Origin: Diadema antillarum
Lineage: Eukaryota
Assembly (NCBI RefSeq): GCF_040938485.1
Contig: NW_027272057.1
Span: 1 to 64,000, forward strand
Direction of reading: 5' to 3'
Length of the DNA: 64,000 nucleotides
The notes below the pieces were generated by a model. The model was not told the DNA's origin. It did no database searches and saw only the letters and a program-made list of their open reading frames with translations. Shown one piece after another: positions 14,532 to 17,144 of this stretch (its first letter is position 1; every line of letters begins with the position of its first letter). The position numbers and the translations under genes were made by a program.

Positions 14532-16793
14532 GTACACGTGCATGCTTTCCACAATATATCATAAACTATGAGTAGCAAAACTTCTACATCATGTCTACAT
14601 ATTGTCACTAATTTTGCTTTTTATAAGCAGTGTCCAGATAAGAACAACACATATTTCAAATAACTAGGAATAAGCCATATAAATTCAATTCAATTTCAAA
14701 TTTCAATATCAATATATTTTCATATTTCTCAGTGAAAAAACTGTATCAATTATTACAAAATTATATAATACATGATATTCAGCTAATAGGCATAATAGTA
14801 TATTGCAACAAATAGAACATAGTGGTCGGTTTATGAAAGTTGGAATCTGAGAATAAATGCTAAAAAAAATACAATGGAACTTACTTAGACGCAAGCTTGT
14901 CGAGCGTAGCTTTATGGCATTTAAATCGAGTGTAAAGATTTAATACATAATTTTCCATTTGCAGATGAAACAAAAAACCAGCATATAGCGCTTGAAAATA
15001 GTTATAAAATGTGAGTTAGGGATAGAAACAACCACTGTAAAAAAAATGAATCCATGTAATCGATGTTGAGTATTGTTGAATACACAAAATGTGAACGACA
15101 AAAATGTTTCCGGACTGAACCGTTTACAGTTATGGTTTATTGAGAAAAAAATACTGATATATCTTTGTAGTTTATTAGGCTTTATTGCGAACATTTTATA
15201 TGGTAGGATGTTTTGTGATACAACAGACCTACACAATAATACGCATCAAATGTGATATCTTGAACATTTATACAATCACCGCTTCCAAAGGTAAACAAGG
15301 CCTTTAAAGGGAATGGCTAGTACCTGATCAGTGGGAATCAGTGGGAATGCTGGGGGATGATTGTTCCAATTCTTGAGGGATTCATTGAGAGAGTACATTA
15401 TATATCTATTTCTGTGTGAAAATTATTTGCTTCAGAATGATCTCAGAAAAAATACCAATGCTCGGGGTTGTAGCAAATTCTTCCCTAATGCCTGTTTCGG
15501 GGTCACATAAGCCACATGCTGCTATAGAATGACTAGTTGTTATTATAGCAAAATTGACAATGATACAATGTATAATGACAATAATACGGTTTAGACAATT
15601 AGAAAACTATACATTTTGTGTCCTCAGGAGAGACGGGGGAGTTTTGGGAAGAGAACACGTGCACCAGCAAATCGAAAAAAAAAGAAATAAAAGAAATAGC
15701 TGTTACCGGTCCTCGATGTCTTTAGAGAAGGAAGGGTTAAGAACACTGTAGCAGAAATTGGGAGCGCAAACAGTTGGACAACAACCATACAGTACAGTAC
15801 AGTGGGACAGTCTTGAATAAAATAGAAAATAGTTTCGATTAGCTTACATGATGTATAGCTCTCAGTGTATAATGTATATAATTTACATTTAAAAGATGAC
15901 AATGATAAACAACCGATGAGTTATGCGGGGAGATTGTTCCAATATTTCGACCCTGCATACAGTCATAATCATTTCTTCTCAAAAATCCCGTGAGTAGGTC
16001 CTACGTGGAAGGTGATAAGCGTCTCGTTGACGGGTGGGATAATTATTAACTGAGTAGTTCGTTTTGAACATGTGCAGAAAAACATTAAGAAGATCATTCG
16101 TAAAATTTTTATACATAACAACGCCTAACTTGCAACTGATTGACAAATTACCCTATATCGACGTAAATAAGCACTGAATTGATCAGTGTGTTAGTAGTAG
16201 CCATGATAAAAAAAAAATCATGGGCGTGTATGCACGAGCAGGATTCGAACCTACAACCTCCTGATCTCTGGACAGGCGGCATTTCCACTCACCGAGCTTC
16301 CGCCCAAAAGCAAGTGTTGGTTGGTATAAGAGAAAAGAAAATGTGGTCTTCGGAGTCTAGAGTATTGAAAAACTAATAGGTCTCAAAAAGAGCTTACTCT
16401 TTAATTTAGGAGTTGAAGTCAAGAAAACTTTTCAGAAAGGCTATACCGAAGAATAATGTTGCTACTAAAGTATCCATTATAGTGAAACCTGCGCTCTCAT
16501 TAGCTGTTTGATTATATAATGTTATTAGCAGTATTGTGTTGTTTGGTGTGATAAGATTTTATGGCTCGCGATCATATTTGAAGTTTGACGAGTAACCTCT
16601 CTAGACCAACACGTACCTCTTTTACGTGTGACTACGATAAGAAAATTCGTTATTTGTGTGTGTTTCAATTTCAGATCGGGTGACGATTTTCTTTCAGCAG
16701 CTCCTCTACGTCGTGCCTCCTGAAGAACCCAAATCCAAGATGCGAATTCCAGGCAGAATCCGTGATCCGAATTCGCAATCCGACAAAATTTAA
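1201..16793 (+). CDS. SLC7 family L-type amino acid transporter light chain, paralog 1 (10 exons, ~508 aa, apparently intact)
   Basis: Exons with GT-AG sites and consistent phases: 1201-1681, 2839-2964, 4378-4477, 6149-6193, 6555-6678, 10303-10406, 11766-11862, 12836-12988, 13801-13978, 16675-16793 (1527 nt, ends TAA). Motifs: [14 protein letters not shown] (TM1), LTYAELG, YPDCPVP (Cys that links the heavy chain), IAKLLAL (TM5 Lys), YAYTGW..LTEEIINP, VALSCLG..NG, SREG, ERPFKVPL. Confidence 0.93.
2976..3522. mobile_element. Foldback-type non-autonomous DNA element (GGG...CCC ends, arms built of cagcccacgag / gagttcgac sub-repeats)
   Basis: Inverted arms (gggtgcacgtcacgagacc ... ggtctcgtgggatggcccc) flanked by the 7-bp direct repeat attcttt. 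Absent from the homologous intron-2 position of copy 2. Confidence 0.75.
4629..5064. mobile_element. Tigger/pogo-like MITE (TA target duplication)
   Basis: TA-cagttcgacctc(cttc)gattatccagcc ... ggctggataatcgaggtcgaactg-TA; in intron 3 of copy 1. Confidence 0.85.
5210..5768. mobile_element. Kolobok/T2-like MITE (TTAA target duplication, long TIRs)
   Basis: TTAA-aggacaagtccaccttcata ... tatgaaggtgaacttgtcct-TTAA, with imperfect inverted arms extending about 200 bp. Confidence 0.88.
7000..9990 (+). mobile_element. Degenerate non-LTR retrotransposon (CR1/L2-group LINE ORF2: AP endonuclease plus RT)
   Basis: Broken ORFs contain GDFN and TLIDN (endonuclease), and YRPISLLSSFSKILEK, LDYSKAFDTIDH, GVPQGSLLGPLLFILYIND, SADDT (RT). 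Several stops and frameshifts. Absent from the 601-bp intron 5 of copy 2, whose flanks match on both sides. Ends are approximate. Confidence 0.92.
10501..10990. mobile_element. Tc1/mariner-like MITE (same family as 25131-25765; right end degraded)
   Basis: TA-ccgggtgtccc...aagcggaacggtggattttcagtac and the inverted gtactgaaaatccaccgttccgc followed by expanded T and G runs. Confidence 0.8.
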
Positions 16794-17144
16794 GATATCC
16801 CATCACGCCTCTGCCTCGTAGTAAATAGTATGAGTCTACCCTGAATAAAGCAGACCGTGTTACTGTTATAAGAACAGCTTGTTTTAACTTAGGTAAACGT
16901 CGGTAGCAGTGTTCTGTTTAGGGCAGAATTCACGCCGTATCAGTAATCTCCTGTCATGGCAGTACGCAAGGATACCAGTATATATCATTGGGGTGGGAAA
17001 AACACGAAAGTGAACGTGCAATTGCACCCCACCGAAACAACAGTAGATATGTAATGTAGTCTTAAAATGAATCCCACAAGGATTGGAACAATCGTCCTCC
17101 AGCATTCCCACTGATTCCCAATGATCAGTTACTAGCCATCGCCT
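15308..17144. mobile_element. Pair of Kolobok-like TIRs with TTAA flanks, enclosing the last exon of SLC7 copy 1
   Basis: TTAA(15304-07)-agggaatggctagtacctgatcagtgggaatcagtgggaatgctgg ... ccagcattcccactgattcccaatgatcagttactagccatcgcct-TTAA(17145-48). The arms match for about 105 bp. Confidence 0.75.
16135..16300 (-). mobile_element. tRNA-derived SINE
   Basis: The minus strand carries a B-box (GGTTCGAATCC). The body (tgacaaatt..atcgacgtaaataagcactgaat) is shared with 29274-30300. Confidence 0.7.

Follow-up and report, generated by a model that had tools for sequence, protein, structure and literature searches.

Kolobok transposons are characterized by TTAA flanks and by 5'-RR...YY-3' termini, in contrast to piggyBac (PMC9587614). 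Non-autonomous Kolobok elements and MITEs (miniature inverted-repeat transposable elements) of this superfamily have TTAA flanks, AG...CT termini, long terminal inverted repeats (TIRs) and a high copy number, and they are non-coding (Kapitonov and Jurka; PMC9587614). Animal Pack-TIRs, in which the ends of a transposable element (TE) enclose host DNA, are defined by a parental copy of the enclosed sequence that lies elsewhere and is not linked to a TE (Tan et al. 2021, PMC8277862); the word Kolobok does not occur in the text of that paper. For Pack-CACTA elements closely spaced insertions and a frequent loss of one end were described (Catoni et al. 2019, PMC6379663). Neighboring insertions together with complementary terminal deletions were proposed as a route to "hybrid" Pack-CACTA and Pack-MULE elements, and rice Pack-MULE pairs that have yet to move were pointed out by the same authors (PMC6379663). 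Here, a pair of Kolobok-like ends is described that encloses the terminal coding exon of an SLC7 gene of the echinoderm Diadema antillarum (contig NW_027272057.1, positions 1 to 64,000 of the forward strand; this whole stretch of 64,000 nt is called the window). The pair is a new instance of a known configuration, i.e., of MITE remnants around an exon or of the anatomy of a hybrid Pack element that has not moved, and no sign of transposition was found. Its probable origin is a bracketing, not an exon capture, in which two insertions occurred close to one another and each was cut down to its outer end.

The inverted pair of TTAA-flanked ends

A repeat search in the region 14800-17700 revealed one inverted pair. 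The arms are located at 15304-15415 and 17037-17148, are 112 nt long and 86% complementary, and have a spacing of 1621 nt. Direct reading of the sequence showed that the outermost four nucleotides on both sides are TTAA (15304-15307 and 17145-17148), and that the element proper extends from AGG at 15308 to CCT at 17144. Thus, the inward-facing inverted repeats abutting TTAA that had been claimed in an earlier analysis of this DNA by a model (the sequence-only reading) were indeed found, and so was the end architecture that it had seen also in two MITEs at 5210 and 45340, which is identical there (TTAA/AGG...CCT/TTAA at 5206-5772 and 45336-45720). The arm length of about 105 bp held for the inverted repeat, but the family similarity of the left arm reaches 30 nt further, to 15445. 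The left end of the MITE family was delimited by the inverted repeat (15308-15415) and by contig ends to 15308-15445 on the plus strand, while the right end, which is inverted relative to the left one, comprises 17037-17144 on the minus strand and was delimited by the inverted repeat, by depth and by a contig that joins the interior to the arm. A 28-mer of the arm has only two sites in the 64 kb, which are the arms themselves, versus a chance expectation of 0. The arms differ at 16 positions, with eight transitions and eight transversions, and an A-to-G bias between them, as would be a signature of editing, was not found.

The TTAA on both sides, the AGG at the start and the CCT at the end agree with the Kolobok hallmarks, whereas the termini of piggyBac are CC...GG. 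From termini and target, the assignment to the superfamily is a putative one, and the ends are called Kolobok-like. In comparison with the described Kolobok MITEs, the flanks, the termini, the long TIRs, the high copy number and the non-coding nature are alike. In contrast, the unit of 1.84 kb is non-canonical, and its interior is unique host DNA.

An inner end was not detected within the pair. A blastn search of both arms against the window with a word size of 7 gave nothing above chance, and a pattern scan found no further CCTTTAA or TTAAAGG between 15308 and 17144, in agreement with the claim of the sequence-only reading that there is no second TIR between the arms. A transposase relic was also looked for, and the list of open reading frames (ORFs) contained no ORF of note between the arms. 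The enclosed items had been recognized correctly: a SINE-like repeat (SINE, short interspersed nuclear element) at about 16130-16320, homology to a second gene copy from 16546 onwards, exon 10 at 16675-16793 and AATAAA at 16844-16849.

Exon 10 of the SLC7 gene and of its paralogues

Three complete SLC7 light-chain paralogues are arranged in tandem in the window, i.e., copy 1 (1201-16793), copy 2 (22915-33772) and copy 3 (43898-53956), and not two, as had been implied before. They were detected by tblastn with full-length homologues, which had been retrieved with exon 1 as query, and the order of the coding blocks of the homologues is kept in all three copies. Exon 1 matches the Pfam family AA_permease_2 (PF13520) at 5e-17 and, at about 5e-40, the chains of human LAT1 and xCT, and by this similarity the gene is an SLC7 light-chain (LAT/xCT-type) amino-acid transporter. 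Exon 9 of copy 1 (13798-13978, plus strand), which was placed by tblastn, donor and reading frame, encodes the last transmembrane segment and has a phase-1 end and the donor GTAAGT. The phase-1 end is ...GGCATGG/GT in all three copies, and it is followed by a single exon 10, which has an AG acceptor and AT as its first two letters.

Exon 10 of copy 1 (16675-16793, plus strand) contains 39 codons and the stop codon TAA, has an acceptor AG, and is in a phase compatible with exon 9. It is preceded by the native end of intron 9 (16546-16674, plus strand), a 3' tail that includes a polypyrimidine tract and the AG acceptor and is homologous to copy 2 (33528-33706), and the first AATAAA past the stop codon, a predicted polyA signal from a pattern scan, is located at 16844-16849 on the plus strand. 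The exon encodes the conserved LAT-type C-terminus D-x-x-T-x-F-x-Q-Q-L-L-x-V-V-P-P-E. The spliced C-termini, ...WWENKP(V/I)WFNQGMD(R/H)xT(I/V)F(F/L)QQLL(Y/C)VVPPE..., align with the C-termini of homologues from other organisms (P0090, P0059, P0053 and P0075), while a PDB search with exon 10 alone (38 aa) gave chance hits only. Conservation, frame and splice signals suggest that exon 10 is joined to exon 9 in the transcript like its counterparts in the sister genes.

A tblastn search with the three exon-10 peptides against the window yielded exactly three sites, one per gene. This agrees with the earlier statement that no other exon 10 is visible for copy 1, and the gap mentioned along with it is present as a run of N at 20078-20222. 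The nucleotide identity of exon 10 is 82% between copies 1 and 2, 75% between copies 1 and 3, and 70% between copies 2 and 3, and these values rank like those of exons 1-8, i.e., ((copy1,copy2),copy3). In addition, copies 1 and 2 are collinear in this region (16546-16572 and 16585-16811 versus 33528-33554 and 33616-33828, blastn), and the homology includes the intron tail, exon 10 and 18 nt of the 3' flank. Each paralogue has one exon 10, the C-termini of the homologues can be aligned, the divergence pattern matches and collinearity with copy 2 is retained. Therefore, exon 10 of copy 1 is the ancestral last exon at its ancestral position, which was inherited through the tandem duplications and was not imported by a transposon. 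By pattern search and blastn within the window, the arms are not present in copies 2 and 3, and, therefore, they arrived after the duplication that gave rise to copies 1 and 2.

These results bear on the possibility of a true Pack-type capture, in which the exon together with its acceptor and polyA signal would have been taken elsewhere and transposed to this TTAA, thereby superseding or replacing the original exon 10. The anatomy is that of a Pack element, with two ends of the same family, TTAA on both sides and a host exon inside, and the run of N at 20078-20222 could conceal a relic of the original exon. However, exon 10 of copy 1 is related to copies 2 and 3 like the rest of the gene, the homology of the intron tail to copy 2 is retained, and the window contains no other exon-10-like sequence for copy 1. 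For an analysis beyond the window, contigs of four public runs were aligned to the region 13600-17600 at 80% likeness, i.e., X1 and X2 (organism label A), X3 (label B) and the small run X8. The bins 16414-16949 were at single-copy depth in the three DNA runs X1, X2 and X3, and neither a donor nor a sister copy of the unit at a likeness of at least 80% was found in them. Over exon 10 a single additional contig was seen (X3, 2812 nt), and its alignment is limited to 16585-16800, which is the extent of the paralogue homology. Taken together, a capture is very improbable. The suggestion of the sequence-only reading that a MITE captured the exon, which now completes the gene, is thus not supported, given an exon that is ancestral in its place, an interior that is single copy in three runs and a window without a parental duplicate.

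The comparison with the animal Pack-TIRs leads to the same point. As in most of them, a single-copy non-TE sequence is enclosed by TIR ends (PMC8277862), and the inverted ends belong to the same family. In contrast to them, what the ends enclose is the sole copy of this sequence. Relatives of the interior were confined to the exon-10 regions of both paralogues, with 72-82% identity, and the interior is single copy in X1 to X3. "Exon between TIRs" is thus no proof of a capture, and the deciding test is a parental copy elsewhere, which was not found for this locus.

Further observations were made on the last two exons of the three genes. Exon 9 (13798-13978, 33000-33180 and 51929-52109) has a DNA identity of 94-98% among all three paralogues, whereas the identity of copy 3 to copies 1 and 2 is only 64-76% in the other exons, and the introns of copy 3 that flank exon 9 cannot be aligned. 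These values point to gene conversion limited to exon 9 or, alternatively, to an unusually strong constraint. The exon-9 donor of copy 2 is GTTAGT. Exon 10 of copy 2 (33707-33772) has 22 codons and then TGA, versus 39 codons in copy 1 and 36 codons in copy 3, and the C-terminal tails beyond VVPPE are unrelated among the three genes.

The arm family and the probable origin of the bracketing

The depth of the aligned contigs was calculated as a sum over contigs, which is not a copy number, and it was taken as an order of magnitude only. In X1 the depth was 5.3e5 at position 15412 and 3.4e5 at position 17094, in comparison to about 12-13 (12.7) for single-copy DNA, and more than 100 distinct contigs were present at each of the two positions. 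The ratios of arm depth to single-copy depth were similar in X2 and X3. These values suggest that the arm family has about 10^4 copies, as an order of magnitude. The high depth (3e5-5e5 versus about 12.7), the inverted repeat and the absence of an ORF are features of MITEs, and, judged by them and by the termini, the two arms represent outer ends from a single non-autonomous MITE family, which is very abundant and targets TTAA (Kolobok-like). Further family copies were sought with an exact 21-mer common to both arms and a 26-mer of the loose-end consensus in metagenome contigs, and with the arm 21-mer in viral contigs, and none were detected. Protein-word searches with a 48-aa ORF across the left arm and with a 92-aa antisense ORF over exon 10 yielded no candidates.

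The contigs were also informative for the junctions. Loose ends were seen at 15445, which showed that the family similarity of the left arm extends 30 nt beyond the inverted repeat. The unique contigs of X1, X2 and X3 all begin at 15416, which is 30 nt before 15446 and is the start that words of 31 letters would give, and the contigs 15416-16128 (X1), 15416-16180 (X2) and 15416-16154 (X3) cross the left inner junction. On the other side, an X1 contig (16249-17081) extends from the exon 10 side into the right arm and crosses the right inner junction. The inner junctions of both arms were thus reproduced by independent contigs, and both organism labels showed the configuration. At 15304 and 17148, the outer junctions are placed between repeats, and neither is bridged by any listed contig. 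In X8 (27 M letters) a contig of 235 nt was seen that covers the unique interior at 15895-16128 with one mismatch, and nothing was seen on exons 9 or 10; this contig may represent either DNA at low coverage or a transcript from the intron.

These contigs speak to an assembly artefact, i.e., a mis-join at the arm repeats that would have placed the exon between them, which the sequence-only reading had named as a point to be checked. Short-read contigs break within the arms, and the unbridged outer junctions would be compatible with such an error. Yet the independent contigs that begin at 15416 in the three DNA runs hold both 30 nt of family sequence and the interior, the X1 contig links exon 10 to the right arm, and exon 10 is found where the paralogues predict it. 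The chance that the pair is an artefact is minimal.

In one contig of X3, positions 15434 and 17037 are joined, with a single letter in between. It implies a unit of about 240 bp, and, therefore, some members of the family consist of two abutting arms. About 50 contigs per run continue beyond 15445 with other sequence. Two opposite-strand joints (15391/17065 and 15393/17061) were rejected, because they connect equivalent positions of the two arms and represent family contigs that switch the arm in the alignment, not real junctions.

The short unit raises the possibility that one palindromic MITE was split in place, either because filler or template-switched DNA closed a break at its fragile center or because of a local rearrangement, so that host DNA came to lie between its halves. 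The two pieces could indeed be the halves of a short canonical copy, as the X3 contig indicates, inner ends are missing between the arms, and gap filling from a template close by is the route that predominates for the single-copy Pack-TIRs of animals (PMC8277862). However, gap filling copies its template, and, apart from the SINE and exon 10 of the paralogues, no interior segment has a second copy in the window, and each gene has one exon 10. The interior also contains the only terminal exon of the gene in ancestral order and orientation. Moreover, most family contigs continue past 15445 with a sequence that is absent beside the right arm; the likeness of the consensus of this sequence to 17008-17023, which would have made the arms exactly complementary halves of one MITE, was rejected as chance, because its local score of 15 is below the 19-24 reached at many random sites of the window. 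A simple inversion would flip the exon and turn the arms into direct repeats. Gap filling in cis leaves parent and copy close together, and it is not supported unless the parent was deleted later. A split in place is thus an unlikely explanation.

Two nearby insertions are the probable origin of the pair. Because exon 10 is native, the arms came to flank it in place. MITEs of the same family would have inserted on both sides of the native exon after the gene duplication, one into intron 9 and one about 350 bp beyond the stop codon. The inner half of each copy would then have been lost, possibly by incomplete excision, abortive gap repair or a hairpin-driven deletion. The outcome would have been an inward-facing pair around 1.6 kb of single-copy DNA, to which the SINE was added later, while exon 10 would have stayed in its place throughout. 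Bracketing by two half-elements, which the sequence-only reading had offered as its second option, is thus favored by the evidence, while the separate insertions and the manner in which the inner halves were lost are what we infer.

The abundance of the family is compatible with this course of events. As a rough expectation, a few 10^4 elements in contigs of at most 0.85 Gb would correspond to about one element per 25-30 kb, and, therefore, several percent of the elements should have a neighbor at a distance of less than 2 kb. A minority of such close pairs should consist of two outward-facing solo ends, and one of them would roughly be expected among hundreds of windows. A probable solo end occurs at the very same spot, since the adjoining repeat R1 ends with ...CCT/TTAA at 15303 without a partner. 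Local reinsertion after excision and incomplete repair of the donor site are established for other cut-and-paste elements. Local reinsertion would raise the likelihood of such pairs further.

The pair resembles hybrid Pack-TYPE elements that have not moved, such as Arabidopsis Pack-CACTA1a and deletion derivatives of rice Pack-MULEs, in that partnerless ends of the same family surround host DNA at its original locus (PMC6379663). Each arm lacks an inner end, which fits the model of neighboring insertions and terminal deletions. In contrast to those elements (PMC6379663), the ends are Kolobok-like and not of the CACTA or MULE type, the host belongs to the echinoderms, no sign of activity was seen for the family, and a putatively functional terminal exon is enclosed instead of a gene fragment. 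The test used in rice, i.e., different target-site duplications at the two ends (PMC6379663), is inapplicable here, as the target is always TTAA. If the arms stem from two events, each TTAA would be one half of a different duplication.

Several points weigh against an origin by two insertions. That each arm is a truncated independent copy is a presumption, and neither an empty-site allele nor a species with a single arm was seen. The loss of precisely both inner halves is a coincidence, with a chance of roughly one in four configurations multiplied by the square of the solo-end frequency. The X3 contig that joins 15434 to 17037 leaves room for one element having been split. The TTAA on either side carries no information, since this is the target of the family in every case, and the depth figures are sums over contigs, not copy numbers.

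Consequences for the gene and neighboring repeats

The left end is located 1.26 kb upstream of the exon-10 acceptor, outside of the conserved intron tail, and the right end 188 nt beyond the first AATAAA (16844). Because the ends are situated in the intron and beyond the first polyA signal, the pair most likely does nothing to the gene. The next AATAAA motifs (17899 and 17909) lie on the far side of the right arm. Pairing of the two arms was predicted to have -166 kcal/mol, versus -40 for shuffled sequences, with a stem of about 105 bp. It is a speculation that in transcripts which reach 17899/17909 the arms could pair, loop out the terminal exon and affect the choice of the 3' end.

The sequence-only reading had described the 3' end of the gene as cargo of a composite transposon. 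This is not supported, and there is no sign that the unit ever moved: apart from the paralogue-sized match described above, no other copy carrying the exon was present in the contigs of the three DNA runs at a likeness of at least 80%. The pair is comparable to bacterial composite transposons, in which two insertion sequence elements surround a cargo, in so far as correctly oriented element ends bracket passenger DNA; in contrast to them, it has ends only and no transposase gene. Both termini are present in the correct orientation, and mobilization in trans would be possible in principle, although to read the exon as cargo is speculative. That the pair is a nascent, still mobilizable hybrid Pack-type Kolobok element, i.e., an intermediate of gene capture before its first jump, is improbable. 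If it were true, a trans-acting Kolobok transposase could excise the cassette and truncate the gene, or spread an exon with acceptor, stop codon and polyA signal.

If the pair goes back to two insertions, it is of minor importance, as a family of about 10^4 MITE copies will leave some exons between remnants. It would have a modest value as a clean and datable case of the configuration from which Pack elements start in the model of neighboring insertions and terminal deletions. Such a configuration is hardly documented in animals, and there is no Kolobok case in the papers cited here. The locus could be used for asking whether such pairs ever mobilize.

Two further parts of the interior were characterized. 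The first one (15446-16129) is low-copy DNA according to the contigs of X1 to X3, without homology to intron 9 of the paralogues (blastn), without a transposase relic in the ORF list and without an inner end. It is followed by the SINE-like, tRNA-related repeat at about 16130-16320, which has a very high copy number (contig depth about 5e5), is on the minus strand according to its tRNA-like part, and matches 29274-29375 and 30295-30394 in the window; ARAGORN called no tRNA gene within it.

By contig depth, the sequences that adjoin the two arms on the outside (14940-15303 and 17149-17360) are highly repeated as well. The repeat R1 (14940-15303) is unrelated to the arms and has a summed contig depth of 1e5-3e5, versus about 12 for single-copy DNA. 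Its terminal CCT abuts the TTAA of the left arm (CCTTTAA at 15301-15307), and thus R1 and the left arm have one TTAA in common (CCT/TTAA/AGG). No matching left end for R1 was found nearby, and R1 is probably another solo Kolobok-like end.

An Rfam scan of 14000-18000 gave nothing but sub-threshold hits that resemble microRNAs, on a microsatellite and poly-G/C runs. Several of these hits fall on 17257-17311, where about 22 G come after a (GT)n run and are separated by a short spacer from about 15 C. According to the ORF translations, similar motifs of G and C runs seem to recur near 960, 9400, 10990 and 12100.

Further elements were observed in the introns of the three genes. An intron of copy 1 probably contains a fragment of a retrotransposon without long terminal repeats, as judged by long open frames at 7148-9441 whose motifs (FGFRKKHAT... 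and SADDTSLF) resemble those of reverse transcriptases. Two more long inverted-repeat elements are located in introns of copy 2 (25127-25769, arms of 187 nt with 93%) and copy 3 (46246-47437, arms of 170 nt with 84%). When the element at 5206-5772 is counted, palindromic MITEs are present in every paralogue.

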